Origin: Hyphochytrium catenoides
Taxonomy: Eukaryota; Protista; Hyphochytriomycota
Assembly (NCBI GenBank): GCA_900088475.1
Contig: FLMG01000369.1
Coordinates: 1-64,000 of the forward strand
Length of the DNA: 64,000 nucleotides
Reading direction: 5' to 3'
Position 1 is the stretch's first letter. Each line of letters begins with the position of its first letter. The notes beneath the pieces are model-generated. The model ran no database searches and had not been told where the DNA came from. It saw only the letters and a program-made list of their open reading frames with translations. Shown here piece after piece: positions 34,734 through 59,788 of this stretch. Both the position numbers and the translations under genes were made by a program.

Positions 34734-35705
34734 ATGAAGGGCGAGACAATGAAGAAAACAAGCACCAGAAAGCGAAGAATGGCCACTAGATGCTGGAAAC
34801 CTCGCTCTTCCTTCTTGCTTTTGCTCTTTTTCGCTCTCTCTCTATCCTCTCGTCATCTTCTTAGAAGTGCACAAGCTGCCTTGCGAGCCTCTCCTCCCAA
34901 CGCCCGACGAGCTCCACTGAACGCTCTTACTACTGAGCCGAAGCAATTTGTAAAAACGAAGCCTGAGGCTGCTTCACTCCTGAGGAGAGTTCCGGAGGAC
35001 CGCTCCGCCGGACAGGAGCAGAGTTCTCATCAGCTCTTGGAAGAGGCGAGCAATAGAGTTGTCTTGACAGCAAAAAACGCTGTTGAGGCGTTAAAAGTGT
35101 TGGCAGACATGAAGAAACAGTTCCGAGAGTCGAAGGGTGTCAAGAATCTAATCGCATGGAAGCGGGCGGTTGACAACGTAGCGGAAGTACGTCGTGAGTA
35201 CGAAGCCGACGTGGCCAAATGGAAACGTGTTAGGGATCGGCTACCCTCGGAGCAGAGGAAACAAGTTACGGAGGAGCTGGCTGGCAGAATGACAGGAATT
35301 CTTTCACGCCTGAGAACTACGATAGACATCGAGTCTGGGGAAATTTCAAGTCACAGTGCAAACCTCCTCCGCGTTGCTTGGCATGGCGTTGTCACGAGAA
35401 GAACGGCTCTTATTAGCGCCTCAACACGCTCCACACAGAAGAAGAGGCAGCACCAAACGTCGAAGCGTCAGGAAGATAAAATTGCATGGGAACGGGCAGC
35501 CGAAGAAAAAGCTGAGGCCTTGAAGGAATACAATGCCGCTATGAAGCGCTGGAAAATTCTTAATGACCGGCTATTCTCGCAGAGGAAGGTGGAGAATAAC
35601 AACAGAAGGCTTAACGGCATCAGTGAGACTAACAGAATTATGAAAGCATTGATAAACTTGGACTACAGTCGAATAGGAGAAGATTGGAGCACTTTAACGC
35701 CATAG
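34734..35705 (+). CDS. Intronless predicted secreted helical-repeat protein, subfamily A (323 aa, probably C-terminally truncated)
   Basis: Basic leader STRKRR, hydrophobic FLLLLFFALSL, AQA cleavage-like site, and two ~110-aa repeats (AWKRAV…EYEA / AWERAA…EYNA). Paralogous to 38400..39674 at protein and DNA level in the leader. Confidence 0.75.
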   Translation: MKGETMKKTSTRKRRMATRCWKPRSSFLLLLFFALSLSSRHLLRSAQAALRASPPNARRAPLNALTTEPKQFVKTKPEAASLLRRVPEDRSAGQEQSSHQLLEEASNRVVLTAKNAVEALKVLADMKKQFRESKGVKNLIAWKRAVDNVAEVRREYEADVAKWKRVRDRLPSEQRKQVTEELAGRMTGILSRLRTTIDIESGEISSHSANLLRVAWHGVVTRRTALISASTRSTQKKRQHQTSKRQEDKIAWERAAEEKAEALKEYNAAMKRWKILNDRLFSQRKVENNNRRLNGISETNRIMKALINLDYSRIGEDWSTLTP

Positions 35706-35913
35706 AAGCATGCTACTATGTCGCTTGGCTGAGTGCGGAAGAGGAGAATGCGAAGGTGAGGCACTTTGTACAAGCGCGGCCAAAGTGACCGAAAGGAAGC
35801 GCACTCTGGGACATAATGCAGCCTCTCCGAAGCATCAAAGTGCTGTCAATGGTCAGCCACTACCAGGGACAGAAGACCCAAGACGAGCCCTAATAGCTGT
35901 AGACCTCTTATAG
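35706..35913 (+). pseudogene. Decayed third repeat of the 34734 gene beyond its TAG
   Basis: After the stop the DNA reads KHAT-(frameshift)-VAWLSAEEENA, matching EHAATVALRNAEEKYV of the 38400 paralog. HNAA…PLP further on echoes YENAA…PLPS. Confidence 0.55.
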
Positions 35914-38399
35914 AATGGAGAAGTCAGATAGCAGCAGCAGCACTTTCAGCTGAGCTATCCAACCGCCTCGGCGATCGTTGAGGACAGCTACTAACCTGCT
36001 TGCAGCCATGCTCCAATGCCAAAGAGAAGGTTCTGTTGACGGTGATCCCAGTCATCAGACACTGTTTCTTCCTTGTCGAGTTCATGTTTCTTCTGTCTCT
36101 TCTCTCTGTGCTTCTACTTCTTATATATAGCAGAATATCATAACTGCTTTCTAGGTGAACGTTTGCGCCGCCTGACATTTCTACTTAATCGAAAGACTTT
36201 ATCAACAGTTTCCAGGAGCACTTCTTGGATCAGTGCTTTAGCTCTAACATAGAGAGTGCTTTTCTAGCTCTATGACAAAGAGAGAGAGCCTCAAACCTAC
36301 TATGGACGCACGTTGGAGCGAAGCAAGAAGGTCAAAGCTATCGTGCACCTGCAAAAGTTGCTATAATCCAATAAGAAGGAAGAAGACAGTGTAGCTGGAC
36401 GTAGTTTTAAAGGCCTCCACGGAGTAGTAGGTGCAGCATATTATGGCCCAACATCTCTCCTAGGAACACTGATGGCTTGTGGCTCACAAGCTACAGGGCA
36501 ACATCGAAGCACGCTGTCGTGATTCTATCTAATCACTGGTCCATTGGAGCTATGTAAATATCCCATGCCATTATCGTGTTCAGCAAGGACATCGTAACTC
36601 CTCCACTACCTCATCATTAGTCATCTGAAGCTGGACTAGAGCGAGCAGACAGCCGAAGGGTAGAGCATATCAAGAGGGTAGAGCATATCAGTAACAACGT
36701 CGGAGGACAAGGAACTTGAAGGACTCATAGTCTGCCCTCGTGAGGGTGGTGCTAACCAAGGTCAGAAATGCGTTCAGGACGTTCTCCTTCACATGCTTTC
36801 GAGGACTCTGGTTTGAAGTTTTTCGTGGGAGCTTCGGCGGGCCCAACCAGAAGCCTGGAGATTAACCGGTACGTGGTGATTGCTTCAAGTGCTGTTCAGG
36901 ACACGGCTCTTGATGAATGTGTCCCATGGCGAACTCGCTGCCATCCAGACCCCTTCCTTATACAGCAGTACATGTCGCGCAACAGGGTCGATAGTCTTGG
37001 AGCAGCGAGCAATATGAAGAAGTATGAGGCTGCAGGGCTGCAGTTTGTCCAGATAATTTTTGAGTGTTTAGAGGTAGTTTGCCTTCTATCCTTGATTGCG
37101 TGCAGCGCTTCCTAAGAAGCTTCACGAAGATCACTCTGTATTCACTTGATGCTTTCCGGCATCGTGGTCGTCATGGTCTCGCTCTTATGATGGCTTGAAT
37201 CGTTCACCCTATTAGAGACTCCTTAGCCATCCATGGGAAACGATGCTCTTGAGATCCTAAAGTTATTCTTCTTTCGCCAGAGTTAGACCCTCCTTCTTCG
37301 CTGACTTGCCTGCTCGAGTGCGATGACATGATCATGCTCTTCATGCCTCTTTCCCGCCTCTTTCCCGTCCCTTTCTCCTATTTGTTACTGCCGAGGACAT
37401 CAACTACTAGGAGGTTTCCTTTTCTTCAGTTGTTCTAATAATAATGTTGATCATAGACAGGGGTGGAAGGCGTTGATGAAGGGGACCAAGACTTCGTAAC
37501 TCTTGCTGCTTCTTCTTCTCCTTCTCTTTTCTCTTTTAATCGAGTAGTAGTAGTAATGCATCATCGTGATATAATAAGTAAAAAACAAGCAACAGAACGT
37601 GAATAAACCTGGAAATAAGGGCCCTTTATTATTTTTATAAAGGGTTTTATAGAAATTAATTCTGAGTAGGCGATGGAAGTTTATAAGCAAGTTTGGTATA
37701 CACCTTATTTTTAGGGTTAGGGTCATTAGCCTTTTAGACTACTGCTACTCGTACTGCTATGCTAGAATAGTGCTGTGTGTTTTGGTAGTGAGGGCATCTC
37801 TGCGGGCAGTCAGTAGTCAGTTCACTACTACCGTTGAAAGCCTTACTACTCGCTTTGGTTGAGGATCTTTCTTTCTCTCTTGCGGCTGCTGGCCGCTCCA
37901 TTCAGCTTTTATGATTTCCTACCGTCGTCTTTATATAATCCGTATAGATCTAATGAGTCCAGCTAACATAATGGTTGGCGGGGTATCCTGCTCTTTCTCG
38001 CGCCTACGAAGGGCCAATGACAGATCTTTGAAGCGGCGGAGACACTCCGACTCTACTACTAAGTATCTCTGTCTAGATAAGAGAGAGTTCGTGGCACTTC
38101 TCTCTTTCTCTGTGACTCCGTCTCTCTCTGTCTCTTCTCTAGCTCCATCTCTTTCTCGGTGCCTTTTCCTTCCATGCCTCGGAGGCCAAACGTATGGCTT
38201 CTGGCTTCATCACCGCAGGGAAGCCCCTGTTCCCATTGAGCAGACTCCTGTAGAGGCATACAGCTACGGCCCGCGGCTCTCCCGTCCCTCGGATTTCTTT
38301 GCATAGCACTGTCTTCTCCCCTGCTCTGTCAATTTGGAGGATAGTTCTATTATTAGCTTCATTCTTCAGAACTGACAGTGCCAAGAAGCGTCTACGATA

Positions 38400-39674
38400 A
38401 TGGCGTATCATAACGGAGAAGACGATAGAAGAATCAGAAAGGGAAGAGTTACGTTTAATTGGCGAAAACCTTGCCCTTCCCTTTTGCTTTTGCTCTTTCT
38501 TGCTCTCTCTCTCTCCCTTTTCGTCTCCCGGAATGCAGAAGCTACTCGTTCCTCTCGACTCCCAACAGGAGGTATTCACAGCAGCCCCAAAGTCCCGAAG
38601 GAGCCTGCAGCCGGTAAACGTTGGAGCACTCAAGGAATAGACTCTGTAGGAAAGAAGCTGTCACAGGCCCCAAAGGCATTTCTGGCATTTCTGCGCACTC
38701 TTAAATCCAACAGAGAGCGCTCTCGGGCCATCAAAAGTGCCTGGGATGACCTTAACGAGAAAGGGTGGTCATCTCTAAGGACTTTAGAACTATTAGAAGA
38801 GAAGAAGGGACAGTTTTCACAGTCCAAAGGTAAATATGAGCTAAGAGAATGGAAAGAGGCAGCCAGGAGAGCAGAAACAGCAGTTCAAGAATATGAGAAT
38901 GCCGCGAACACCTTTAGAAGCCTTACTGAGCCGCTACCATCGAAGAAGAGAGAGGCTGTTGCTGACATGGCTGGTATTCTCAACAATATTGGGGAATGGA
39001 GAGCTAGGATTGAGAAACACAATAGTGAGATCTTAAAAAGCTCCGAGGAGGAGGTTGCCCGGAACTGGAATGACCTTAGCGAGAAAGAGCACGCTGCCAC
39101 CGTTGCCTTGAGGAATGCGGAAGAGAAATATGTGCGTCAAGATGCAGAGCAGATGAGTCTGGAGGAGCTAGAAGTATGGAAGAGGGCACTAGACGGAGTA
39201 AGAAAGGCACTCAAGGACTATGAGGAAGCCGCGAATGCCTTGAAAGGCCTCGGTGATCTGCTGCCCTCGCAGAAGAAGGCCGTCGTCGAAGACAATGCCT
39301 TCATGGCTATCGAGAATATTAAAATATGGAGGGCAAAGATAGAAGCAGATCATTGGCAAGCCTCAAGGTTCATCGCTGTCCTCAGATGGAAGCCCTATAC
39401 TGAGGCTCGGACAGCGGTTGACGACGCAGTGAATTTTGCGGTTGAGAAGGCGGAACAGGCGTTAACAACAACAAAAAGTCCAGAGAAGCTCACAGAGTGG
39501 AGTGAGGCATACAAGAAAGCCATGGATGCACTAAAGGCCTATGAAAGAGCCGGACAAAAGCTCAACGACGAGCTTGCTCCTGAAATGGCTCCACCGTCGA
39601 TGGCCGAAGTAAAGTCCAACGTCGAGGTTGCCTTCGGAAGACTCAACGGGTTGCAACTTCAGATAGAGCTATGA
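38400..39674 (+). CDS. Intronless predicted secreted helical-repeat protein, subfamily A (424 aa, three ~108-aa repeats)
   Basis: Long open frame with leader RIRKGR…KPCPSLLLLLFLALSLSLF…AEA. Repeat anchors at W115/W223/W330, W151/W260/W367 and Y165/Y274/Y381. Confidence 0.85.
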   Translation: MAYHNGEDDRRIRKGRVTFNWRKPCPSLLLLLFLALSLSLFVSRNAEATRSSRLPTGGIHSSPKVPKEPAAGKRWSTQGIDSVGKKLSQAPKAFLAFLRTLKSNRERSRAIKSAWDDLNEKGWSSLRTLELLEEKKGQFSQSKGKYELREWKEAARRAETAVQEYENAANTFRSLTEPLPSKKREAVADMAGILNNIGEWRARIEKHNSEILKSSEEEVARNWNDLSEKEHAATVALRNAEEKYVRQDAEQMSLEELEVWKRALDGVRKALKDYEEAANALKGLGDLLPSQKKAVVEDNAFMAIENIKIWRAKIEADHWQASRFIAVLRWKPYTEARTAVDDAVNFAVEKAEQALTTTKSPEKLTEWSEAYKKAMDALKAYERAGQKLNDELAPEMAPPSMAEVKSNVEVAFGRLNGLQLQIEL

Positions 39675-42219
39675 CCTAAACCAGGGCGCTTCCAGTGTGA
39701 TGGTTGTTGTTCGAACGCCTGGCAGACCTTTCATGGCAAAAGATCCGCGCGCTAGAAAGCAAGGTGAAGAGCATGACGAAGGTACGGAGAGAGTAATAGG
39801 CAAAGCGCTGAGACGATGCGGTCATCCTTTCGCGCTCATGGCCTGAAGATTGGCCCCTGGCTGTGGCATGTCATCACCTGCCTCAATATCCTGATGTCGT
39901 GCAATAATGACAGCCTCCTTCCACGCCTTTGTCCTCTTTCTGACCTCCAAAAGTGTTGAAGAGATTATTACATGTGGGCTTCACTCATCACGCGGTATAT
40001 CTTCTGGGTTGCGTAGAGAGAGAGAGAGAGAGAAAGACAGAGGGATAGAGAGACCATAATGGAAACTGTTATTAGGAAAGGACAAGCAAGACCTTCAAAT
40101 GGCGCGAGAGACAAGGAGTTAGTTGGACCGCAATGCCAGGACGCTTTATGAGATGAATAGATGGGTAGATAGAAAGAGCGGGGAGGACCAGACCAGAAAG
40201 CGCTATCGATCGAGCAGACTAGGAGACAGAAAACTCTTGAACATCTACTGGGTCTATGGCAGTTGTAGCTGTAAGAAGAGCAGCATGGGCGTTTCCGGTA
40301 GGCGCACATTCTATTAGATCTGTACGGTGAGGACGAGGACGTGCGTGACTAAGACCGTCAACAACCGCGCTCTGGCGTTGATGATGAGCACCGTGCTTCT
40401 TCCTCTTACGCCTGAGGTACTACTGTCTCTACTGTTTACGTACTTCTAATCTCGACGGTTTGGATGATGCTTAGTGTCTCTGTGTCTAGCGTGTAAGTGC
40501 CCATTAGTATTCTATGACATCTTTATTATGATGACCACGGACTGCGCAACAAGCTTGAGCATCCATCGCTTATTCTGGCTATCTAGGGCTGGTGGGAGTC
40601 AATGAGTCTTCTCTCCTGTTCTCTCCGCTTCGTTTCACTATATCTGGCGGATGGATCCGGTTCCTATCAGCCCTCCTCTGCTTGTCACTTTTTCTTTACG
40701 CTTCTATTCCTAGGCAGACTCCTTCTTACTCATCTTCTAATCTCCATCAGTAGTGAGCAAGAGCCCTGATCAGTCGTCTTTTAATTGCATCATAATCCCG
40801 TGATAGACTTCAAAAATAAACATCAGTGTCACGGCCGTCCTTGGCAAGAACCGCAGGCACCAAACGGGGCCAGCAGCAGCGTCTAGTTCTAAACGCGACA
40901 AATACGTGGTACACTCTACTACTGATAACACATCCCAAGTAAACTCATACTCTTCCTCCACACAGAGTATCTGCCGCGCGTCTAAGATCCATCCTTGTCC
41001 GGGATACGGAACAGAGGCTAGGAATCTACGGAGAGTTGACCATCGTCATCAAACCGCCATTTACCGCTAAACACAGAGGACACGAGTAATAGGTTACTGG
41101 CTGGTACTGAATGGGATAAGGACACTGATACCACGGAGCAGGGAACAGAAGTTTATAATAATACTAGGAAACAGTGCGATGGAAACAGACAGGCAGTGCT
41201 GGTCACCGCTGCAGAGTCGTTGCTAGAACCAGCTAACCCCTGGTTCCTTTTTTTCGATAAAGTCCGTCTTCCAAGCCCAGACAGTAGCGTCCTCCTACTA
41301 CTCAGTCTCCTACGACTGAACTGCGTCATCGTTATTCTTAGTTTCTTATTGAGCAGGCTCCTTCTTGTCCAGAACGCGCCAGAATTTTTTTGCTCTATAA
41401 ATCAAAGCGATAGCCTTCTAGCTTTCCCCTGCTGTTCCCATCTTTAGGGCTACTTTTTCCTCTCTTTTTTTTGTCCTATCTTCCTGCTTCTTTCCTCTGA
41501 AGACCTGGTGTCTTCCTCTGTTCACTGAGGTAGAACTACCTCCTGAGGTGTGCGCTGGTCCCGTTCCTTCTCATTCAGCCCTCGACCACGTCAAAAGACG
41601 AAGAAGACAGACCTAAAGTAACTGGCTTTCGGTCCCTTTCTAGCTCTGTTATCTTTGAGGATAGTTCTAGAAAAAAGGAGTTGAGTCTTTTTGTATCTCT
41701 CTCTGTCTCTCTCTCTCTGTCTCTCGCTGTCGCTCTCCTCCTCTCTCTGTCTCTCTGTCTCTCTCCACCTTGCTCGCTCAAGTAGCCCTCTTTCCCTCAT
41801 TCTTTCGCTAAACTACTCCGAAGGAGGAGAGAAGAAGAACACGAGCAAGAGGTACTTGTAAGCCCTACAACGTCCTGGTCTACGCACTCGTTATCGGAAA
41901 GAGAGAAACCACTTTCTTCTTTTCTCTCTTCTCTCTCTTCTTTATCACTCGAGATGATCAAAGAAGGGACAAAGAGGAAGAGTCAAGAGACGGGAGAGAA
42001 CATAGACAAAGCGTCCATTGTTCCACTGGTTCTTCTTATAGGCTTTCCCTTAGCAAATGCGCTCTGGTCTATCCGTAGAGGGCAGCGGCAGGTAGACATG
42101 TCTTTGACTTGGGCCAGCCTTGCTACATTCCATTCCACAATCTCCACTGATGCATTGAGGAGGCACAGGTGGGGAAGCGCCATCCACGACGAAGGTTTTG
42201 AGCAGAACTGCGACCGTCA

Positions 42220-42918
42220 TTGTGGCAGGGACACCTTGCTGTTAGTACTATGACTCTGAGCTCAGCGCCGATGACCTCCAGAGGACCACGGAAGCAGAGT
42301 GTTCAAAGGGCTGGGCAGCTCTTCTTACGGCGGCGCTGCTTTTCCTATTCCTTCCTCCATCTTCTCTTTGTCGTCTCTCTTTTCTCTCTTCTAGGGCTGG
42401 AAAGTAGCGAAGCTTTGGGATTTCCGCGAGTTTCGAAGGTGAAGGCCACCTTGACAAAGAGCTTGAGTTCACTGAAGCACAACGGCGAAGCGTGGCTCTA
42501 TCGGAAGGGAATTAAGAAGCCAAAGATACCGGCCGGGACACAACTCTACGATAACGTGCTATCCGATGGGCTGTGGAAAAAGGCTAAGGACGGCCTTGAG
42601 GAGGCGGATTCTTTGATGACTACCTCAGAACAGGCTGCGAAAGAGACACTCAGAAACGTGAGGTCTAAACTGCGAGCCACGAAGACCGATCTGAACAAAG
42701 CATTCGAGGAAGCGATAGCAGGCATAAAAGCGACGTCCCGTGAAGACAGACAGCTGCAGATTGCCCAGATCAATCACAGATACGATATCCTCAATAAGAA
42801 GCATAAGGATCTACAGAGTAGGTTGATATTCTACCAGCGCCTTGAACTTGGGAGGAAATTCGGACTAGTTCCCGGGTCGGATGGCGCAAACTTAAGAGGC
42901 GCGAACATGCGTGAATAA
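42220..42918 (+). CDS. Intronless predicted secreted helical protein, subfamily B (likely ATG start at 42249 or 42270)
   Basis: RRRCF leader, hydrophobic FLHLLFVVSLFSLLGL, SSEA cleavage-like site, Lys-rich amphipathic segment and coiled-coil body. Clear paralog at 45041-45713. Confidence 0.8.
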   Translation: MWQGHLAVSTMTLSSAPMTSRGPRKQSVQRAGQLFLRRRCFSYSFLHLLFVVSLFSLLGLESSEALGFPRVSKVKATLTKSLSSLKHNGEAWLYRKGIKKPKIPAGTQLYDNVLSDGLWKKAKDGLEEADSLMTTSEQAAKETLRNVRSKLRATKTDLNKAFEEAIAGIKATSREDRQLQIAQINHRYDILNKKHKDLQSRLIFYQRLELGRKFGLVPGSDGANLRGANMRE

Positions 42919-43155
42919 ATGACGGTGGTCGACGATTTCAGCGCAATGTTTTGAGCTCCGCACAAAGTTCACACTGCTGACCTCACTCCCGAGGATGTGC
43001 ATGACATAAGACCGTCGTCATCCTCCGCTCTCAGGCGGTGATGATGAGCATTGTGCCTTTCTTTGCCTGATATACCTGAGCTGCTACCGTCTTCTCTGCA
43101 GTTTCCCTACTACTAATCTCACAGTTTGGATGATGCTTGGTGCGTCTCTGTCTAT

Positions 43156-43550
43156 CATGTAGAAACCCATTAATAATCTATGATATCTCTATGATGACCA
43201 CGCGGACGTTGCAAATCTAGGGCTGGTGGAAGTTGGATGGACCGCCTTATGGGGCTCGGAACGGTGGAATATCCAGGGAGGGATATTAGGTTTTCCTGGC
43301 GCGGTTGTAGGATGGGGCTGACCTCCTCCGTCACTTCCAGATTTCCTCGGTCAGCCTCAGCCTCCGCCGCCGGCTCAAAATCTAGACACAGCGGCAACGG
43401 ATAGAAGAAGCACAGCTGACTAGACCTATGCGCTGCCGCAGAACAGTCAAGTAGCATGTAAGAACCCATTAATAATCCATGATATCTCTATGATGACCAC
43501 GCGGACGTTGCAAATCTAGGGCTGGTGGAAGTTGGATGGACCGCCTTATG
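43156..43550 (+). repeat. Near-identical ~96-bp direct repeats (43156-43251 and 43455-43550) flanking ~200 bp of unique sequence
   Basis: aacccattaataatcYatgatatctctatgatgaccacgcggacgttgcaaatctagggctggtggaagttggatggaccgccttatg occurs twice, 299 bp apart. Confidence 0.92.
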
Positions 43551-44788
43551 ATCCTCGGAACCCCTGCTATGGCGAGGGAATTGGTAGCCTTCTTCCCGTG
43601 TTCCTTCATCATGATAAGCCAATGAGCCTTGCCTTCTGTGCTCTTCAGATTCTTCTTTCCACTATGTCTGGCGGATGGATCCGGTTCCTGTCAGCCCTCC
43701 TCTGCTTGTCAGTTTGCTTTTTTTATGCTTCTATTCCTAGATCTCTTCTTACTCATCTTCTAATATCCATCAGTAGACCATGGGCCCTGAGCAGCTCGTC
43801 TTCCGTTGGCATCATAATCTCGTGACAGAGCTACAAAAAGATGTCACTGTCTTGGCAAGGACCGCCGGCACCTAGCGGAGCCAGCAGCAGCGTCTAAACG
43901 CGACAAGTATGCTCTCAGTGCCTGAGATATGCAGAGCTCACACTCGTCTTTCTTACTGCTTGCGACCGCGGTCTTCTGCTCAAGCCTACTGCTAATGATC
44001 TTGACCTTTCTAGTAGGAACATGGTACCCCTACTGCTAACACTAGCCAAGAGAAAGCTCTCCCTACAGAGTAGGAGAAGCATCTAGCTACTGCTCGTCCA
44101 AGATCCATTATTGTCCGCGATTCAAAACAGCGGAGGAACCTAGAGAACCGAGAGTTGCCCATCATCAAAATAACAGCGTTATTGCCGCTAAAAGACGGAC
44201 CAGGAACATGAAAGAAGACTAGTTGAACCTAGGAGACTGTGTGTCATAGAAACAGCTATAGAACCAGACAGGCAGTACCTTCTCACCGCTGCAGAGTCGT
44301 TGCTAGATCAGGGAAACCGTGGTTCCTCTTCTAAAGGTCCGTCTTCCAAGCCCAGATCCTACCCTCGCTGCTCGTCAGCGCGAAGGGCTGTAGAGTTTTT
44401 AGTCATAGTGTCATAGTAGAGCGGTAGAGCCAGTAGAAGTACTGATATGACACGCGGGGTTGGGCACGACCGTCAGGGTGGACGGCGTTATCGTCATACA
44501 TTTTTTTAGCCAGGTCCGTCTTGTCTGGAGCGAGCGAGAACTACCGTTATTGTTCTATCTTTCCCCTACTTTCTTAGCCCTCGAAAGACCTACTGCCTGC
44601 CTCGGTCTCGTAGTTCTACAGCTGTAGGAACAGAACGACTGAGTGACGGTTCTTGGTTCTTGGTCGTCCTCCTCTCCCTTCGCTTTCATCCCCAATAAAC
44701 GGCAGAAAACAGACCTTTTCTTTTATAAAATGGCTGACATTTATTCCCATCTCTGGCTTTGGCTTTGTGAATAATATGATTCGTTTTC

Positions 44789-44844
<56 letters not shown>

Positions 44845-45040
44845 CCCTTCTCTCATTCTCTTCTATCTCTTGTTCGCCTCGCCTACTCGCCCGCTCGTCC
44901 TCCATTTTGCCCCTGTTCCCCTTGTTTCACGCTTTATAACAGGATTGGCGGCAAAAGCGGTAGACTGTCCATGACCTGATTGACCTAGCTCCACATTCTC
45001 CATTGAGACACAGAAGGGTCAGCGCGAGTCACAAAAGCTT

Positions 45041-45713
45041 TTGGAGTCCGCGACGGTCAGCGTAAAACGGGAACTCTGCTTGCTAGTCCTGATCCTGACG
45101 GCCCTTGGCACAGCTGAAATGGCGCCGATAGGGGAGCGCCGCTTTTCCTCTTTACGTCTCCGCTTTCTCTTCTCGGTCTCTCTTCTATCTCTTCTGTGGC
45201 TAGGAAGCAGCGAAGCATGGAAAGTGCCGAGAGTATCGTTGAAGAAGTTGAAACCCAGTTTGTCAAAAGAGTTGGGAGTCGGTGAAGCACAAGAGCGAAA
45301 CTTGGCTCTATCGGAAGGAAATTTGGAAGGCAAAAACAAAGGCCACGAGGCCGGAGACGGGCAAGTTGCCATCAGATGGAGTGTGGGAAGAGGCCTCCAA
45401 GGGCCTTAATGTTGCGGAAATATCGTTGAAACAGGCGTACGACGGATATGAAGCCGCGATCAAGAGTGGCGGCGCCAAAGAGCTAGAAGGGATCAGAAGC
45501 TGGACTAACAAGCTCCAGGACGCGAAATCTCAACTGGACGCCACGAAGAAAGCTTTGGAGGGGACATTCGAGACAAAGATGAGAGATATACCCGCGACGA
45601 CGTTACCTGAAGATAGACAGCAGGCGATTGCCGAGCTCAAGCGCGGATACAATGTTCAGAATGCAAGGCATAAGAAGCTAGTTAGGACTGTCTGGAAGCA
45701 TACTGGGCGCTAA
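45041..45713 (+). pseudogene. Subfamily-B paralog split by a 1-nt frameshift (pseudogene or assembly indel); likely ATG at 45119
   Basis: ORF 45041 carries the signal (…LLWLGSSEAWKVPRVS…) and ORF 45282 carries KHKSETWLYRK…SDGVWEEA…EDRQQAIAEL. Removing one A from aaaa at 45265-45268 gives LSKSWESVKH, aligning with LTKSLSSLKH of 42220. Confidence 0.8.
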
Positions 45714-47731: not shown

Positions 47732-49132
47732 ATGGAGTGGCAAGGTCCAAAAAGGATGTCGACGAGGAAGAGACGTGGACGAAGTGTCGCACGACATGGA
47801 CAGAGGAGATGTTGCTCTCCTACCCTTCCTCCTCTTCTCTCCTCTCTTCTCATTTTCCTCTGCCTCTTCGCTCTTCTCCTGCTTAGAAGCACGGAAGTAT
47901 ATGGCATGCGGAAATCTCTTTCTCCGACCCGAGAAGGAGGCGCCAGAGCAGAGCCAGGTACCACCACAACCGCGACAATAACTAGAGCTGGCTCATTAGC
48001 AAGGGCGAAGAGTCCGAGAAGAAAGGCTGTCGGACCAGAAACTGTTCCCCTAAGAGTTGAACCGACGGTTGACGAGACAATAGCTCTCCTGGAAACGAAG
48101 GGAAACGAGGCTCAACGCTCACCAAACCCAGAGACGTTCAGGGACTGGGGTGAGGCGATTGGGAACGCTGCACAACGGCTTAGTAGTACGGAGAGCAGGC
48201 TTCCAGAGACAACGATTGACGAACTTAGGGCCAAGATTGAAGCGCAGGCAGAGGGATTTTTATCCATGTCAACTGCGAGGATAGAGCTCGCCAAGATAAC
48301 CGATGGACAGATCCTGGCATGGCTAAGAGCCGTCCCAGATTCATGGCCCGATATAGCTTGGAACGACCTTTTAGCCTGGGAGAAGTCTCTTCAGAGTGCG
48401 TACATGGAGCTAGCGGACGCTAAGACAGCGTTGAATGAGCTCGCAGCGACGGTACGGATCTTCCTACGAGAGGATGTGAAGGGTAGTCGGGGACTATCCT
48501 CGAGGATCACATCAGCCACGAACAGAGTGACCCAGGTTCAGACTGGGTTAAGAAGGACCGCCATTGGGATCTTAGGACTATCAATGATGGCACTCTTCCG
48601 AATAGAGCAGGGGGCCAAGCAGTCGATGACTCGTCTGCAAGCGCAGATGGCACTGGTGCGGAACTCTGCTAGCGCTTCGGAGGCGACGATGAGGGACCTG
48701 GAGACCGCCTTCGAAGCGGCGTACGCAGAGCTGATCAGGGCCAAGACGAGCTTAGCTACCTTTACCGAGATGACAGGCACAACGCCGTGGAAGGAGCTCT
48801 ACCACCAGCACCATCAAACCTGGAGGATAGGAGTAGTCAGGAACAACATTGGCCATATGGAAAAGGAAATACGAGCGACAGCACTTGGAATCCTAAGGAT
48901 TGCACGGGAGTTCGCTGAGGTGAACGAAGGAGCAGTGCTGGAAGCTATGACCCTGGGAGAACAGAATAGGGCACAGCCTGCACAGATGCTGAGAGCGGAC
49001 ACGCATGATGAACCGAAGGCAAAGGATCTGGCAATGTCAAGCCTCCAGATGGTCACAACTATCTTGCAAAGGATGACAGAGCGCATAAGAGAGAGATTTT
49101 TGCCGGCAACCAGCGTGATCAGTTCAAGGTAG
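47732..49132 (+). CDS. Intronless predicted secreted helical-repeat protein, divergent subfamily A member (466 aa)
   Basis: STRKRR leader identical to the 34734 protein, hydrophobic LLSSLLIFLCLFALLLL, a T/P/R-rich linker and two 107-aa repeats (AYMELADAKTAL…RRTAIGIL / AYAELIRAKTSL…RATALGIL). Shares RAKIEA with the 38400 protein. Confidence 0.85.
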   Translation: MEWQGPKRMSTRKRRGRSVARHGQRRCCSPTLPPLLSSLLIFLCLFALLLLRSTEVYGMRKSLSPTREGGARAEPGTTTTATITRAGSLARAKSPRRKAVGPETVPLRVEPTVDETIALLETKGNEAQRSPNPETFRDWGEAIGNAAQRLSSTESRLPETTIDELRAKIEAQAEGFLSMSTARIELAKITDGQILAWLRAVPDSWPDIAWNDLLAWEKSLQSAYMELADAKTALNELAATVRIFLREDVKGSRGLSSRITSATNRVTQVQTGLRRTAIGILGLSMMALFRIEQGAKQSMTRLQAQMALVRNSASASEATMRDLETAFEAAYAELIRAKTSLATFTEMTGTTPWKELYHQHHQTWRIGVVRNNIGHMEKEIRATALGILRIAREFAEVNEGAVLEAMTLGEQNRAQPAQMLRADTHDEPKAKDLAMSSLQMVTTILQRMTERIRERFLPATSVISSR

Positions 49133-49310
49133 GGAACAATGTGCCTATGTTAGGTCAGGTGTTACTATCTTACAAAGCTGCCATCAAAGATCAGCAGCCA
49201 ATAGAGAGACCAGGAAGGAAGAAAGATCAATAATATACAAAGCTGCACTCTCTTCCGGTTTTCTCTTTCTCTCTCCCTTCCTCCCTCTTAAGAATGTCTC
49301 TTGCTGCGTC

Positions 49311-51929
49311 CTAGTGGATCAGATAGGCTAGGCCGATACGCTGTCCTCCTCTCTCGTCTCCACCTCGTCGATGCGCGGAAGAGGAGATAGGAGGCACCTC
49401 AGAACGTGGAGCAGGAAGAGGGTGAGTGTATGAAGAGCGAGAAAGAGAAGCCACAGAGAGAGGCGCAAGGATAAGCCAGCCCATGAAGATGGCCAAGGAG
49501 CAGATGTATGGGATAGGAATCCCTAGCGCCAAACGGAGCAAGAGGAGAGAGAGAACGATAAGCGGAGGAAGCAGGGCACAAGCGAGAGCTAGCACGTGCT
49601 TTCCTCTCTTCTTCAATAAAACCAACGGGTCTCTTTCTCTCGCTTCCGCCGGCCTGCTCTCTCTGCTGCGGCCTTCTCTACGACTGAGAAAGGCTCCGAT
49701 TCTGTCGTTGCCTAGCTCTCTCCTCTCTCCTTCAAACACCGCTGAGAGCATATGCCGAAAGGCCCGTGCGACTTTTGAAAGGTAGAGAAGAAGAACAGAG
49801 GAGAGAGGAGAGAAGACGACCCACCAAGGCAGAGAGTGATCCTCCATGTCCATCTTATAGACCAACAGAGCAGAGGATAGAAGGACAGACAGAGCAGGTG
49901 CAACCACCTTCATTTGCTGTTGCAATGAGACAAAAGAGAGATGAGAGAAAAGATGCATGGCCAAGCCCATGTATGTCCAGAGAGGGATGCAGGTGACACA
50001 GAGAGAAGAGAGAAGCCCGTCCAGATACATCGACAGAAGAAGAGGAAAGATGTCTACCAGTCCGCAGACCACCGCCATGAACACGATTTCTATAGGAAAC
50101 TCTCTGTTCCAAAAGAAGATACGAAAGAGCTGTGACGAAGAAAAGAATCTCTCTCTTCTTCCGTTCCTCTCTCTCTCTCTGTCGCTGGTTGACAGGCCAC
50201 CAGCAGAGGAAGGCCGAGCGAAGAGAAGGAGGTAGATTGCCACTGCTCCTTTGACGGCAGCAAAAGCCAGGGGCATGAGAAGGACCGAATGAAAGGGAGA
50301 GAAAACCATGAACCAAGAGAGAGAGACATCTCCGTCCAGTTTGAGGCAGAGAAGAACTGGGAAGAGTATGACCATTGCAGAGAGGGAGAGACACGCAGAG
50401 AAGCCCACAAAAGCATCCAATGTCCTCTTGTTCCAACAGCGAAGTACTCTTCCTTTCTTTGCTCTTTCAAGTCTCTCGTCTCTCTCTCTCCTCTCAGCCT
50501 CCAGACTCAAGAGCTCCTCTCTGCATCTTCTGTCTGCTTCTTTCGCTGCGATGTAGAAACGAAGACCATCTGATAGAGAGAGAGAAGGATTGAGGCGGCG
50601 CAGATGGTGCTGGTGCAGGAGCGAGAGAGAAGAAAACTCCGTTATGTTGAGAAAGTTCCATAGTGAGTCCATTTTGGAGAGACTTCTTAGGCGCCTGGGC
50701 AAGGAGAAGAGAAAGAGGAGTGTTATTCAGAGGATCAGAGACAAGAGGGGAGAGAGAGAGTAAAGTAGAGAGAGAGCCGGACAGAGAGAGAGAGAAAGAG
50801 AGAGAGAGAGATTGAAAGAAGAAGAGATGAATTGAGAGAGATTGTGACGAAGGAGGACTGGGGACAGAGAGCTGGAGAGGCCAAAAGAAAGAGGGAGAGC
50901 AATAAGAAAGAGGAGAGAGGTTGAGAGGGTGATGACGAGAGAGCAGAAAAGCGGGGGGAGAGAGAGAGCGCTTGGGTGCAACAAGGGAGAAAAGAAAGAG
51001 GCCTGCGCGTTATCATCCAGACCCGACGGCGTTCCTTTGACTCACCTGGACACAGCACCGGTTCTAGCGACAGTAGGACCATCCAAGCTCCTCAGGATTT
51101 CCAGCAGAAGATCTTCGGAGAGAGAGGTGAGCCTGTCAGGTTTGGAGAGAGAGGCTTCCTCTTTCTTGCTGTGCATCTCTCTTCCTTTCTTCTTCTCCTC
51201 CAAAAGAAAGTCTTTGGATGGAGAGGTGAGCCTGTCACCTATGGAGAGAGAGGTTTCCTCTATCCTATTACTCTCTTTCTCTCTTCCTTTCTTATCTTGG
51301 ACCCAGATTGTCTCTTCAGCGGCAGCGCAACTTGAAAGGAGAACTTCTCGTGTCATCTCCCGTCTCACAATGCGCTCTTTCTCTCTCTTTCCTTCTTCTG
51401 TTGACGAGATGGTGGAGGCAGCCTCTTCTTCCATTGTTGGCTCCTCGCTTTGGAAGCGCTGGACGAACGTAGATATCTCTTTCTTTTTGTCTTCCTCCGT
51501 GGTTTCTGGGGCCTGTTCTAGATGTCTTCCTTCTACCTTCTCAGTACGATGATGCGGGCAAACAGAGTGTTCTGGTTCTCTTTCTCTCTCTTCTCCTTCT
51601 CTCTTCCTTCTTTGGTCTCTCATCAGCTTATACTGCTCTCTCTTTCCTCTCTCTCTCTCATCTCTCCTTCCTCCCCGTCTTTCCAGTACGGTTCCCGTCC
51701 TCTTTTCACCTTCTCGAAGCGAAGAATGCTCTCCTGCACCTTTTAACGGACAGAAGCGAGAGAAGGGAGGCGGCAGGAGGGAAAACCGTAGAGAAGAGAG
51801 AGAGAGAGAAGCGAGAGAAGAGACCCGCAGCGATCGTCTCTCGGGCCTGCAGGAAAGCTTATTGGAGGTTGCGTTTCTCTCTCCCACTCTTAGTGTTTCT
51901 CCTCTCTCTCTCTCTCTCTCTCGTCCCAT
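49311..51929 (-). CDS. F-box protein with a multi-pass TMEM185/TMEM203-like membrane domain (2 exons; start codon uncertain)
   Basis: LTSLSEDLLLEILRSLDGPTVARTGAVSR spliced (intron 51045-50695) to RLRSLSKMDSLW gives a complete F-box. Repeated LLCLKLDG-x4-W-x2-VFSP / LLVYKMD-x6-WWVVFSPL motifs are typical of TMEM185-like proteins. Confidence 0.8.
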
Positions 51930-52069
51930 TCTCTATCTCTTAGAGTTTCTGTCTCCCTCCTCTCTCCCTGACTTCCTCTCTCTTCTCTCTCACTCTCTCT
52001 CTCTCCTCATAAGAACCCCATGAGCACACGAAGTCTCATGACACTTTCTTTTACCTGAGAAGGGGAGAC

Positions 52070-52166
<97 letters not shown>

Positions 52167-53893
52167 GGAGAGAGAGAGAAGCGAGGGAACACGGACAGAG
52201 AAAATGTGTAACTTATTGAGGATTGAGTAACAGAGCTTGAAGACAAAGCAAAGGAGAGATCTAACAAAGTGAGAGAAAGATGGGGTTAGGGGAAGAGACA
52301 GAGGGCGAAGAGATATGAGAAGAGGAAGATCTGGCTCTGTACATGTCGTTTCCTGTACAGACTAAAGGATACAGAAAGGGCCGTTTCAACCGCCCACCCA
52401 GAGCTCCCCGCGGAGTCACCTCCATCTGGTGAGTAGCCCGGTCATTCCCTGGTGCCGAGGATACTCACCACGTGATCCAGTTCAGAACCTAGTACAAACG
52501 GAAGAGGGGATGAACTTGACGGCTGGCTTAACGGCGATTGTTCCCTCAGGTGGTGATGAGTGTTTGTTGATGGATTCGAAGCGCTGCAGCCGCTTGGGCT
52601 TCTGCGCTTGGCTGACTTTTGGCGGCACTTCTCCCGCCAGCTAGCTCTAGCACTACCGCGCGGCACTACTACTACCTTGAGAGTTGAAGCTCACCATTCG
52701 TTGGCCGCAGGCGTCGCTGTTCTTAGCTTCTTGGGGCGTTGTACGGAGCTGGAGCTCGTGCTGGACCCGATCGCCAGGTCTAAAGTACAGGAGTAGTTTA
52801 GGGGCAGTCCAGCGTCTAAGGAAGATAGAAATTGCGTCCAGCGAGTTATGCTCTTTCTAACGGCGATTGGTGCCTGTGCGTAGCGGTTTGACTGCCCAGA
52901 GAAGGTGCCTTGTCGCTGTTTGTGCGCCTTAAGGAGCACGTCGTAGCTCTTTTTCGCTTCATTCTTCCTGTCGTTTTCTCTCAGTAAAAGACCGTAGTAG
53001 ACTGCGTATCAGCCGTTTCCCCGTCAGCCTTTGACATCTTGAGCTGCGCGTCGAAGCTCTTTGGGTCGACTTACTCTATTAGCGAATCACTAGCGCTATC
53101 TGCCTCTTTACCTCTGAGTTCCGCTTACCCGAGGAGGACCTTTCGTCACTTTCCGTCGAGATAAACAAGAGAACCATCCTCGATTTGTAAAGACCGCCCT
53201 CGGTTAAATGAGTTCCTCTTCGTCGTGAGCGAGAAGCGTGTAGCACTCCGAAGAAGAGGAGTCGGGGAGAAAGGAACAGGAGGACCTTTTGAGGTCGCAA
53301 CCAGGATCTTAGCACAGGAGGCGATAGGAGAAAGAGAACAGAAAGTCATTCAGGCAGCGGGGGGCGTTGCGGAAAGCAAAAGGAAATGCAAGCTCCTCCC
53401 TCTTTGCGATGCAAACTAACTCACACAAATACTATTGAAGAAACTCAAAGCTGGCTCTCTCGCTTGGCTGCCTGGCGCGGTAGGGATCTCTTAACAAGCT
53501 CCGTAGTTCTCTCTGTCCTCCTACTATGTGATAGTAGTGCCGGTCACCTGGTCTCTATGTTATGCAAAAGGCATCGCACGGTCGGCGCAAGGGTATGTCA
53601 CCGAGAGCGCTACGGAAGACCCACTTTGCCATGAAAATAATAAGCAGACTGGCTACACGGAAAGGAGGAGACCCGATGGGGACGTACTAGAAGATAAACG
53701 TCGCTCTGGCTTTGTTCCGTACCCTTCTGTCTTACGTGGACCTTCGAGAAGAGCTTAGATGTGCGCTTCCAGTGACATACGCTGTGCTATGCATGACTGA
53801 CTGCATAATGAAGAAAGAAATGCAACTACGGAAAACATACAGATTTATAGATAATTGTTGAGACACAGGAGAAAGCAAGCCTAACTAGAACGA

Positions 53894-55708
53894 CTATTCT
53901 TCTCCACTCTCCTGCTTGCGTAGCAGTCTTCTCGTCGTCGTTCCCCCTGCAGGACTTATGATATCTGGATTTTGCTTGATAAACTCTGAGATGTCGATGG
54001 CGCCAAGGTCGGCTCCTGCATCATCCACTCCGCTGCTATCGCCAGCTAGAGGATCACCACCGAAGTTCAAGCCGACCACAGACAAAGCGACAACTGTGAG
54101 TCCCGCTAGCAGCAACCCCGTAACTCCTGCGCCAATCAAGCCCGCCCGTAATGGCGTCAGCCACAGTCTCTTCAGCCTGTTTGCCTGTTTTTCCAGCAGA
54201 CTGAGCACTGCTAGATTGCCTCGAGCATAGGTGATGGCATCAGTGGCGTCTTGAAATCCTTGGTAAGTCTTTTGTAAATTCTCTAGAGCGGGGTTATCCG
54301 TAATCTTTCCGTCCAGTTGCTGTTTCTCCTGGTTGAGCTTAGACTCATAGTCGACCTTCAGCCTTTGCTGTATGGCTTCCTCAGTCTTGGCAGATAAGGC
54401 CTTTTTAATCATGCGTTTGAGTGTAATGTCCACGCCACGTGCGGATGATAGTCGCTTCTGCGCCTTACGCATCTCCTTGCGTACATTTGCTGTCCACTCT
54501 TTTGGATTGACATCTCCCTCTGCACCGCGGCTGGTCATCGCCGTCAAGTCTTTCACAGCCTGCCTGTAACCCTCCAGTGCAGAATAGTCCCTCCCCACGC
54601 GATCATCTTTGTTAGCTTGTTCCTTGGTTAGTCCATTTAAGAAGTCCTTAAAGCTGTTCACGTTGTGTTGGTCCGCCTGAGGAAGATGATTTAACGTACT
54701 GGGATCCTTGGCTTTGCTGCGTTCCACATGCCCCACGAGTGCAGCCACCATCGGATCATCTAGTTCCCACTGAGCTTGTTTCAGACGGGCATCCACAGAA
54801 CTCAGCTTTCTGTCGTAACCTCTGATCGTGGTAAGAAGCTTCATGAATTGGTCGTAGACATCCTTGCCAATCTCTTTGCGCAACTTTTGCACCTCTGAAA
54901 GAAACCGCACTTGTTCTTTACGGGCAATCGTAATAACGTCCTCATCTGCCTTCTTCGCTCCCTTAAGGGCTTTCTCGGCTCTGGTCTTTGCATTCGCCTC
55001 TTTCCCTGGAATGGCTGCCCCAGCAGCTAACTCTTCCTTCAAGCTTACAGAGAGTCCGTCTGTGAGCGGATGGCTGTTCGCACTTTGCAGTGGTACATCG
55101 TTCGGAACATCGGCTGCTGAAATCTCCCCGCCCTCATCGGATCGAGCTAGAGAAGAAGAGATGGTAGCTTCCTCAGCTACTTGTGGAGCCACAGGAGAAG
55201 CGGAAGTTTCACCAGAGGATGGTGGGGACTCTTTGGTTTGAGTTGTTGACTTCTTCTTGAGAAATGTTCCGAAGCTGTGAAGCACCTGAGACAACCTGAG
55301 GCTGCCAGCGTCCATAACTCGGGACACCAAAGAACCCTTTGACCTTGCAGTTCTCCATTGTTCCTCAAGGTATGCGTTATGAGCTAATTTTGCCCTAGTC
55401 ATCTCGTCTTTGGCCAGCTGTACTGCGTCGGCTAAGCTGTGAGGTTTATCATGCGCCTTGTGCCAGAATTTTAGCTTCGGGGTCCACTTCCGTAGCCCCA
55501 ACCATTTCCTTCCACCCGCCTCAGCTTGATGGTTTCGACCCAGGTGGCTGTTGGCTGGATCAGCTGCCGATTTACCTCCTTTTTTACTAAAAAATCCTGC
55601 CCTTGCCCCTGGAAGAAGAGGGATAGTACATAGAAGGAACAAGAGACAACAGGCTAAAACCGGAAGAGAGAGCCAGGGATGACGCTTCCTGAAGACAGGA
55701 AGAGCCAT
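53894..55708 (-). CDS. Intronless signal-peptide, coiled-coil protein with a C-terminal hydrophobic segment, subfamily C (604 aa)
   Basis: RKRHPW leader, LPVLACCLLFLLCTIPLL, ARA site, long K/E/A/L helical region, Gly-rich hydrophobic AGLIGAGVTGLLLAGLTVVALSVVG, and tail GAIDISEFIKQNPD…RRLLRKQESGEE. Confidence 0.88.
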   Translation of the reverse strand: MALPVFRKRHPWLSLPVLACCLLFLLCTIPLLPGARAGFFSKKGGKSAADPANSHLGRNHQAEAGGRKWLGLRKWTPKLKFWHKAHDKPHSLADAVQLAKDEMTRAKLAHNAYLEEQWRTARSKGSLVSRVMDAGSLRLSQVLHSFGTFLKKKSTTQTKESPPSSGETSASPVAPQVAEEATISSSLARSDEGGEISAADVPNDVPLQSANSHPLTDGLSVSLKEELAAGAAIPGKEANAKTRAEKALKGAKKADEDVITIARKEQVRFLSEVQKLRKEIGKDVYDQFMKLLTTIRGYDRKLSSVDARLKQAQWELDDPMVAALVGHVERSKAKDPSTLNHLPQADQHNVNSFKDFLNGLTKEQANKDDRVGRDYSALEGYRQAVKDLTAMTSRGAEGDVNPKEWTANVRKEMRKAQKRLSSARGVDITLKRMIKKALSAKTEEAIQQRLKVDYESKLNQEKQQLDGKITDNPALENLQKTYQGFQDATDAITYARGNLAVLSLLEKQANRLKRLWLTPLRAGLIGAGVTGLLLAGLTVVALSVVGLNFGGDPLAGDSSGVDDAGADLGAIDISEFIKQNPDIISPAGGTTTRRLLRKQESGEE

Positions 55709-58600: not shown

Positions 58601-59788
58601 TTATCGGAGTCGTCTTCTACTTTTCAAACCTCCGCTGGTAGGGGCCGTTAATAAGTCTGGGTTCGCCCGGAGTAACTCGGTAATGTCAATGACGCCTCCT
58701 TTATTCCCATCGGCACCCTCTTGCTGCTCACCCGTGGCATCAGGGGAGGGAAGCGTTGCACCGCTATAATTGGGTCCAAGCACCATGCCCACGGACATGA
58801 TGGCAAGCAAAGTTCCAATGGTCAGGCCTCCAACCAAGGTATACTTTAGTTTTGGCCACCACGGTCTTGTCAAACTGACCATCCGCTTCACTTCTAACTT
58901 GGCATTTGCCACTGCATCTGACGCTTTCTTGATACGCTCCCTAGCGGCAGCCACCTCGTTCATTAGTTCGCGCATGTCTTTATATTGTTCACCGTNNNNN
59001 NNNNNNNNNNNNNNNNNNNNNNNNNNNNNNNNNNNNNNNNNNNNNNNNNCTCGTTGCTTAAGAAGGTCTCGGTACCCCTTCGACAGGGCCGGGTCAATCT
59101 TCTTGAACTTCTTGTTGACGCTTTCGACTAAGTCTTGGGCAATTTTAAACTGATGGTTTGCTGCTTGGAGCAGAGTCCTCGTGAGACGCCTCGCCTCGCT
59201 TCCCTGAGCCCGAACGCTCTTTTGCGCTTTCTCAATCTTTATGGCTTCAGTCTCCAACTGCTCTGGCATCAATTGTTCTTCCGGCAACCGCGACACTTCA
59301 GATGCTGCGTCTGGAGCGGGACTTCGCTTGTTCTCCCCTTCTAGCCATCGAAGGTATGCGGCGTATATCTTTTTCAACAGCGGTGTCTCCTTGTTTCGTC
59401 TCCAAAAGTCTGCAATCTCCTGGTTCTTGGCTTCCTCAGCGCTTCTGAACTTACTCGCTGCGGTTATTGAGGAACCGAATAATTCTTGCGTCTTTTGTTC
59501 CGCTTCGTCGAGGGACTTCACAATGTCAACGTCTGAATCCTCAGAGCGACGTTGCTTAATGTTCAACCGGTGGGACACTCGACTGAAAGCTTTCCGAGGG
59601 CCATTGACAAAAGTGTCAGTCAAGAGTTTCTTGGCGCTAAACTTAGGCTTGACAGAGGCGGCCTTGACAGGGGCTGCTGTTGCTTGCGACAGCAACGTGA
59701 TCCCAATCAAGAAAAGAGCAAGAACAAGGAGAAAATGCCATCGCCTTCTCGGGCTGGCGTATAGTCTGTCTGCCGCCTTTCGAGCCAT
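58601..59788 (-). CDS. Intronless signal-peptide, coiled-coil protein with a C-terminal hydrophobic segment, subfamily C (~395 aa; N gap 58996-59049)
   Basis: PRRRWH leader, FLLVLALFLIGITLL, ATA site, coiled-coil body, LVGGLTIGTLLAIMSVGMVLG, and tail GVIDITELLRANPD…KSRRRLR*. The tail aligns with the 53894 protein. Frame continuity across the gap is assumed. Confidence 0.8.
   Translation of the reverse strand: MARKAADRLYASPRRRWHFLLVLALFLIGITLLSQATAAPVKAASVKPKFSAKKLLTDTFVNGPRKAFSRVSHRLNIKQRRSEDSDVDIVKSLDEAEQKTQELFGSSITAASKFRSAEEAKNQEIADFWRRNKETPLLKKIYAAYLRWLEGENKRSPAPDAASEVSRLPEEQLMPEQLETEAIKIEKAQKSVRAQGSEARRLTRTLLQAANHQFKIAQDLVESVNKKFKKIDPALSKGYRDLLKQRXXXXXXXXXXXXXXXXXXXGEQYKDMRELMNEVAAARERIKKASDAVANAKLEVKRMVSLTRPWWPKLKYTLVGGLTIGTLLAIMSVGMVLGPNYSGATLPSPDATGEQQEGADGNKGGVIDITELLRANPDLLTAPTSGGLKSRRRLR

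Follow-up and report, generated by a model that had tools for sequence, protein, structure and literature searches.

The 64,000-nt stretch of Hyphochytrium catenoides DNA analysed here (contig FLMG01000369.1; called the window below, and the reference for all coordinates) carries, over about 25 kb between positions 34734 and 59788, a cluster of orphan genes labelled A–G along the locus (Table 1). A first-pass annotation had described seven single-exon open reading frames (ORFs) in this region, encoding signal-bearing helical proteins. All seven are present, but that of D is split over two frames and that of G holds a 54-N assembly gap.

Gene models of the cluster

ORFs of 323–604 codons lie beyond chance expectation in 64 kb at 50% GC, and in every ORF of the cluster frame 0 was ahead of the other frames by 0.5–0.8 bit per codon, as scored with a codon table derived from four HSP70 genes of the same genome. 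Because the ORFs are long, their frame preference is clear and their paralogs are still open at a synonymous divergence (dS) of 0.5–1.2, the A–G ORFs are, as judged from sequence, real protein-coding genes. The conserved genes upstream in the flank (glutamate synthase and MCM) occur in the window as exon-sized fragments, in agreement with the earlier description of split conserved neighbours around unsplit cluster ORFs. The GC content of the cluster genes (0.45–0.53) and their CT microsatellites are like those of the rest of the window.

Three of the gene models need comment. The ORF listed for C opens with TTG at 42220, and comparison with a paralog on contig C450 places the likely ATG at 42271 (or 42250). 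D differs from C by one extra A in the A-run 45265–45268, which produces a 1-nt frameshift, and is either a pseudogene or a homopolymer assembly error. In G, only one frame is open on each flank of the 54-N gap; the upstream flank contains the ATG and leader, the frame of the downstream flank is set independently by homology to the C terminus of F, and in-frame continuity across the gap depends solely on its estimated length. The assembly contains no second copy that bridges the gap, and G is probably one gene with residues missing at the gap. Further assembly gaps lie at 13620–13641, 22125–22144 and 34454–34477, the last about 260 bp upstream of the start codon of A, so that the promoter region of A is partly unread.

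Table 1 Positions of the cluster genes and of their parts in the window
Feature	Position	Strand	Description
Gene A	34734–35705	+	323 aa, intact, ATG; leader, basic Pro-rich linker, two ~107-aa units
Gene A leader			Basic N-region; hydrophobic core at residues 25–39; AQA site
Gene A helical repeat units	35016–35342, 35346–35672	+
Gene B	38400–39674	+	424 aa, intact, ATG; A-type leader, then three ~107-aa units
Gene B repeat units	38709–39035, 39036–39362, 39357–39671	+
Tandem duplication, copy 1	40334–42918	+	~2.7-kb unit (5′ flank plus gene), ends with C
Gene C	42271–42918	+	215 aa counted from the likely ATG; founder of the C/D family
Tandem duplication, copy 2	42990–45713	+	~2.7-kb unit (5′ flank plus gene), ends with D
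Gene D	45119–45713	+	Frameshifted tandem copy of C; leader frame 45119–45277, body frame 45282–45713
Gene E	47732–49132	+	466 aa, intact, ATG; singleton; core at residues 35–49; N-region with 10 K/R
Gene F	53894–55708	−	604 aa, intact, ATG; signal-like N terminus with GARA site
Gene F regions			Low-confidence Ser/acid-rich to about residue 235; helical 240–510; Gly-rich hydrophobic 522–552; acidic tail
F/G common module, in F	53897–54196	−	Membrane segment plus tail
Gene G	58601–59788	−	At least 376 read residues; split by 54-N gap 58996–59049
F/G common module, in G	58604–58891	−	Membrane segment plus tail

Paralog families, duplication and divergence

BLASTP comparison of the seven proteins paired A with B (29% identity, E 4e-12; bodies 27–29% identical in protein), C with D (35%, E 2e-15) and F with G (34%, E 6e-11, confined to the last 119 residues at the C terminus), and found no partner for E. 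In the genome assembly (61.0 Mb, 4,759 contigs), A/B have relatives in a 432-aa B-like gene on contig C2973 and a 191-aa stump on C773, and C/D have a 498-aa C-like gene on C450 that is 45% identical to C; these paralogs are lone genes amid ordinary genes. The same search returned no further copies of E or F, and relatives of the F/G tail were limited to F and G themselves. Three families (A/B, C/D and F/G) plus the singleton E is the defensible count, so that the three paralog groups proposed at first stand and E remains ungrouped.

A single superfamily for all seven proteins was rejected as unproven, the families not being linked by profile tests: the A/B unit profile matched E at hmmsearch E 0.006 within a ten-sequence set and with an hhalign probability of 3%, and matched the C family with an hhalign probability of 0.1%. 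A leader cassette common to all families was likewise rejected, as C, C3 and G scored lower with the A/B leader profile than two antisense control ORFs did; leader homology appears to hold within families only. The recurring words that might have formed a shared promoter motif were merely CT-rich.

The earlier claims of tandem duplication with broken copies and of strong divergence within the paralog groups were both borne out. C and D close the two copies of a duplicated unit whose flanks are 77–80% identical, and copy 2 contains a younger 110-bp duplication (43153–43262 and 43452–43561, 94% identical). Repeat number has changed within A/B, and copy death is seen in the frameshift of D and the truncation of the C773 copy. 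The ratio of non-synonymous to synonymous divergence (dN/dS; Nei–Gojobori) was 0.95 for C–D (dS 0.52), 0.89 for C and its C450 copy (dS 0.50) and 0.47 for B and its C2973 copy, where dS is saturated at 1.2. Frames of 215–604 codons that are still open at such divergence imply selection against stops, and the pattern suggests fast protein change constrained to a helical, Cys-free and sequon-free form (a sequon being the N-glycosylation site N-x-S/T) rather than plain decay.

The analogy with the compartments of ‘two-speed’ genomes, drawn in the first-pass annotation, is weak: the intergenic DNA contains CT microsatellites and one degenerate dispersed repeat, not transposon fields, and the paralogs elsewhere are single genes among ordinary ones. 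The dispersed repeat, at about 36726–37406 between A and B, is 65–75% identical to at least 20 sites on other contigs, overlaps a 115-aa ORF (36768–37115) that has no Pfam match and is probably an old mobile-element relic. A direct repeat (51100–51165 and 51199–51264; 99-bp spacing, 82% identical) sits in a GA/CT-rich low-complexity stretch (50700–52200) that yields spurious 200–300-aa ORFs on both strands.

Leaders, predicted helical bodies and sequon depletion

Every intact protein begins with a net positive N-region (3–10 K/R), a hydrophobic core (Kyte–Doolittle hydropathy 1.9–3.1 over 15 residues) and a small-x-small, AxA-like site. As a crude heuristic, these three features together were present in 6/6 targets and in 2/33 other ATG-initiated ORFs of the window, in keeping with the Arg/Lys-rich leader, hydrophobic stretch and small-residue site described earlier; the basic, low-acid linker and the K/E/A/L-rich body were also found as described. 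In the A/B family, DNA conservation starts near the start codon and stops near the AxA site, with 88 nt 76% identical between A and B. Since the leader is conserved at this level in DNA while the bodies are only 27–29% identical, the leader is probably translated.

The leader cores are encoded by CT-rich tracts (34801–34849 in A, 38468–38530 in B and equivalents elsewhere), that of B including a 13-nt CT microsatellite, and the signal-like cores may have arisen from such tracts. CT/GA microsatellites occur all over the window, where they translate as SLSLSL or RERERE. All nine copies retain an ATG-initiated open frame through the CT tract. If the tract in B were the pyrimidine stretch of an intron, the GT...AG pair would span 91 nt, and its removal would break the frame. 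In six leaders, drawn from three families (A, B, C, E and the C2973 and C773 copies), a Cys precedes the core by 3–8 residues, amid basic residues; were the leader left uncleaved, this Cys could be acylated next to the membrane.

Behind the leader, the A/B bodies are built from repeat units that share W-x13-Y, an LP loop and additional tryptophans; comparison of the unit pairs of B with shuffles gave z = 17, 5.8 and 6.8. The AlphaFold2 (AF2) model of B has a mean predicted local distance difference test (pLDDT) score of 76, mostly 85–95 in the body, with helices at residues 104–139, 145–176, 183–245, 254–285, 290–356, 361–391 and 398–423. These form three three-helix bundles in which helices of 63 and 67 residues bridge adjacent bundles and the W-x13-Y sits on the middle helix of a bundle. 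Together with residues 240–510 of F (see below), this model supports the helical bodies of the earlier description.

The B model was compared by VIA-align with 48,161 representatives of the Protein Data Bank (PDB) and was also searched with Foldseek, with 50 rows taken from each. Triple spectrin repeats headed the whole-body matches in VIA-align (Z of 12.7 over 299 aa for 1u4q_B, 12.4 for 3edv_B and 12.1 for plectin 5j1i_B), and a single B unit matched the utrophin repeat 3uul_B with Z 10.7 and a root-mean-square deviation (rmsd) of 2.4 Å over 111 aa. Foldseek gave weak rows only, with plectin and nesprin repeats at probability 0.9–1.0, and an Atlas shape search with the model gave generic matches. 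At the sequence level, the spectrin model PF00435 had no Pfam match in A, B or the C2973 paralog at either E ≤ 1 or E ≤ 0.01, and the A/B unit profile reached nesprin-2 among PDB sequences at no better than E 2.9. Because there is no such sequence link and Z values of this size are common in helical repeats, we call the predicted fold of the A/B body spectrin-like and do not assign it to the spectrin family. The first-pass statement that no known family is recognizable thus stands for sequence, but the A/B body appears to have a common fold, tandem spectrin-like three-helix bundles.

F and G each have a short, classical signal-like N terminus followed by a helical region, then a Gly-rich hydrophobic segment and an acidic tail of about 55 aa. 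They share only the C-terminal membrane segment and tail, a module with the pattern G-x-IDI-[ST]-E...NPD...GG...RR-x-LR; the C-terminal end is RRLLRKQESGEE in F and RRRLR in G. The DITELL sequence of G would fit an acidic dileucine pattern. The AF2 model of F has a mean pLDDT of 52, with residues 240–510 reaching 66–89 and the remainder poor. Its fold neighbours include 6gy6_A (Z 8.5) and 7nmq_A (Z 8.2), α-pore-forming toxins of the ClyA/Hbl/XaxA type, amid many unrelated helical matches; with so weak a model and such generic matches, a fold assignment for F was rejected.

The most informative property of the proteins is what their bodies avoid. In the mature parts of ten proteins (the residues after the putative cleavage sites, paralogs elsewhere included; 3,245 residues), there are one Cys and one N-x-S/T sequon. 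The expected number of sequons is 14.3 ± 3.5, and none of 5000 composition-keeping shuffles was as low; the window genes alone have 1 against 11.0 expected. The body of E has neither Cys nor sequons, and the lone sequon lies three residues past the C-terminal membrane segment of G, on the tail side. An internal control came from HSP70: the BiP-like paralog (C3024:1668–2984) has 0 sequons in 439 residues, and three other paralogs have 3–6. Loss of sequons from buried sites is among the sharpest signatures of secretory-pathway proteins (PMC5562741). Because the depletion matches both the BiP-like control and this published signature, the bodies probably face the endoplasmic reticulum (ER) lumen; we take sequon depletion as a signature of exposure to that lumen and as the best evidence here for such an orientation. 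Loss across the whole surface suggests, in addition, that a glycan would interfere, as on protein–protein contact surfaces.

Between E and F, on the minus strand, lies an apparently single-exon 463-aa ORF (49311–50702) with many hydrophobic segments. Its Pfam match to TMEM185A is weak (E 0.004, below the cut-off), and its 9 Cys and 1 sequon set it apart from the signature of the cluster.

Interpretation and relation to known systems

We consider it probable, though with appreciable doubt, that A–G form a taxonomically restricted locus of fast-evolving, ER-directed, all-helical proteins that lack Cys and N-glycan sites. Each product would be directed to the ER by an N-terminal signal, or signal-anchor, whose basic N-region is unusually long, and an all-α body without Cys or N-glycan sites would be exposed to the lumen or the cell exterior. 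A and B would be rods of two or three spectrin-like three-helix bundles, and F and G are most likely type I membrane proteins, whose helical ectodomain would lie outside and whose short, conserved acidic tail would lie inside. The locus grows and decays as genes are duplicated in tandem, repeat units are gained or lost, and copies are frameshifted or truncated, and amino-acid change in the C family proceeds almost as fast as silent change. Our working guess is that the products are non-glycosylated, disulfide-free extracellular or surface rods whose entire surface is available for protein–protein contact, either self-assembling into a coat or wall layer or binding foreign surfaces. The A–G products most likely enter the ER, on the basis of the leader heuristics and of the depletion in sequons and Cys. 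The sequences establish the ORFs, their paralogy and repeat structure, the predicted fold, the duplication, the rates, the sequon and Cys depletion and the lack of homologues in the libraries searched; entry into the ER, cleavage of the signal, topology in the membrane and, most of all, function are what we infer. The earlier claim of secreted proteins is supported as far as probable entry into the secretory pathway.

Several observations weigh against this interpretation. Cleaved signal peptides do not typically have N-regions of 15–35 residues, and the A/B c-regions contain charged residues, so the leader may be retained as a type II anchor. F and G carry their positive charges N-terminal to the C-terminal membrane segment, contrary to a simple type I topology. 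The paralogs are not independent in the sequon test, and the per-family P values are 0.0015, 0.06, 0.15 and 0.08. A dN/dS near 1 is also compatible with relaxed constraint, and a Z of about 12 (below about 13) may be reached by helical repeats through common arrangement alone.

Some of these points bear on the alternative that survives best, unlikely as we hold it to be: that the proteins are residents of the endomembrane system and are not secreted, the A–E leader being an uncleaved type II anchor, perhaps with palmitoylation of the pre-core Cys in A, B, C, E and the two A/B paralogs, and F and G being two-anchor or type I proteins. The long, highly basic N-regions (7–10 K/R), the charged c-regions, the Cys shortly before the core in six leaders and the second hydrophobic segment of F and G would all suit residents, and residents of the lumen such as BiP should be depleted of sequons just as much. 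Yet each leader closes with a small-x-small site plausibly spaced from the core, the C termini show no retention motif, and fast evolution with copy turnover is unusual for housekeeping residents.

We find it improbable that some or all of the genes are decaying or never-functional ORFs, either young de novo genes or pseudogenes, whose family features are left over from recent duplication. The frameshift of D, the stump on C773, the C-family dN/dS of 0.89–0.95, the lack of homologues in the libraries searched and the encoding of the hydrophobic cores by CT-rich tracts, which are common throughout the genome, all agree with such decay. Neutral decay would, however, scatter stops and indels, whereas nine copies of 215–604 codons are open at dS 0.5–1.2. 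In addition, the repeat units retain their W/Y/LP signature, sequon and Cys depletion needs selection on the protein, and dN/dS between B and its C2973 copy (B2) is 0.47.

Mitochondrial targeting has a slightly smaller claim still. Presequences of the cytochrome b2/c1 type consist of a basic, nearly acid-free stretch, a hydrophobic stretch and an AxA-like cut. The cluster leaders have this layout (15–35 basic, nearly acid-free residues, a hydrophobic stretch and AxA; 10 K/R against 1 D/E in both A and E), and could be read as bipartite presequences in which a hydrophobic sorting segment is followed by a cut by the inner-membrane peptidase at the AxA-like site, placing the bodies in the intermembrane space; a MIC60 helical bundle (9qwr_B, Z 11.7) is also among the structural neighbours of B. 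Against this, sequon counter-selection is not expected in mitochondrial proteins (PMC5562741), the basic parts are dense RKRR-type runs and not amphipathic helices, the N terminus of F is short and classically signal-like, and generic helical matches like that to MIC60 are many. Foreign DNA, for example the relic of a giant-virus insertion, would account for orphan, apparently intronless genes in a genome reported to contain giant-virus-like scaffolds with fewer introns (PMC5795050), but is very improbable given GC content and CT microsatellites that match the rest of the window, flanks of ordinary spliced host genes, paralogs lone among host genes on three other contigs and the absence of any viral hallmark domain in Pfam scans.

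Returning to the ER-directed, helical families that we favour, homology searches agreed with the earlier claim that the genes are lineage-specific. There was no Pfam domain match in any cluster protein, no homologue among PDB sequences, none of B, F or the F tail region among 5.8 billion proteins, and a blank in an exact look-up in a 15-billion collection, in an ESM Atlas feature search with F and E and in a metagenome contig scan with B; the housekeeping family that could have overturned the claim was thus found in none of the libraries searched. An eight-unit profile gave 9 matches among 1.84 billion representatives. Three of these were fetched, one Kelch-like and two TPR-type repeat proteins, and were rejected because they hit a short YE.A..L..L.D.LP-like word repeatedly and so are not relatives; the other six match likewise in many short stretches and were set aside too. 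Our literature search found nothing pertinent on secreted spectrin-like repeats or on orphan secreted proteins of Hyphochytrium.

The role in biotic interaction proposed in the first-pass annotation, as effectors for instance, remains conjecture. No RxLR (regular expression R.LR) was found in the first 130 residues of nine proteins, where EER occurs once, in the C2973 paralog and without RxLR, and no PEXEL or LFLAK motif was found in the cluster proteins. We rejected membership of the WY/LWY effectors, because the W and Y lie on one helix, no WY/LWY fold was among the 50 Foldseek and 50 VIA-align rows and the Pfam RXLR/WY models were unmatched. There are likenesses to oomycete RxLR and WY/LWY effectors: a signal-type N terminus, a more conserved N-terminal region before a fast-diverging, all-α, Cys-free body, tandem helical units in which W and Y are conserved, small tandem clusters, and a host from the stramenopile sister group of the oomycetes. 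In contrast to those effectors, the A/B proteins have W and Y 14 residues apart on the same helix and lack RxLR and dEER. H. catenoides, moreover, is not known to be pathogenic. In PMC5795050 it is portrayed as a saprotroph-like ‘pseudofungus’ whose genome yields just one RxLR candidate.

Three other systems invite comparison. Spectrin repeats, as in spectrin, plectin and other plakins, utrophin and nesprin, resemble the A/B unit in length (about 106 against about 107 aa), in the three-helix bundle, in the last helix that continues into the first helix of the next unit and in the aromatic residues of the core. A and B differ from them in having no sequence-profile match, a conserved W-x13-Y on the middle helix, only 2–3 units and no actin-binding or other partner domains, and in carrying an ER-type leader, whereas spectrin-family rods are cytosolic. 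Tail-anchored nesprin/KASH rods are like F and G in that a variable helical rod leads through basic residues into a single C-terminal membrane segment, and the short tail behind it is conserved best. Unlike them, F and G also carry an N-terminal signal-like segment, their acidic tail has about 55 aa and RRxLR at its end (the KASH peptide is lumenal, about 30 aa and ends in PPPX), and it has no genomic relatives beyond F and G. Apicomplexan dense-granule (GRA) proteins are orphan and apparently intron-free; they carry a signal sequence, their bodies are helical or membrane-associating, and they have no domain matches. The cluster genes, orphan and apparently intron-free in an intron-rich genome, resemble them in general features only; apicomplexans belong to another phylum, and H. 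catenoides has no known host-cell stage.

The families thus seem to be new, and their kind, small clusters of fast-evolving orphan secretory proteins, familiar. We offer as a doubtful extension that A and B are the first spectrin-like rods for a eukaryotic cell exterior and that the locus is a hyphochytrid-specific, non-glycosylated and disulfide-free helical toolkit that forms a coat or is delivered to other cells. If so, the products would either self-assemble as the coat of the surface or of the cyst, or reach the outside or inside of pollen, algae or competitors, as the cytoplasmic effectors of oomycetes do, which are likewise Cys-free but unrelated in leader and fold. Should the products have a purely structural role, or the genes be hardly expressed, this would be an ordinary set of orphan genes. 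Avoidance of Cys and N-glycan sites over about 3,200 residues is a simple, checkable signature that could help to find similar families elsewhere.

Hyphochytrids are a little-studied sister group of the oomycetes, and H. catenoides is a pollen-rotting member. The sole published analysis of a hyphochytrid genome found almost none of the oomycete effector families (PMC5795050). The read data described there are diploid, with SNPs at about 2.75%. A locus of fast-evolving proteins that apparently face the export route and have a leader type of their own would show what hyphochytrids use instead, and would be a test case for the birth of signal-bearing families whose hydrophobic cores are encoded by the abundant CT-rich tracts of the genome.

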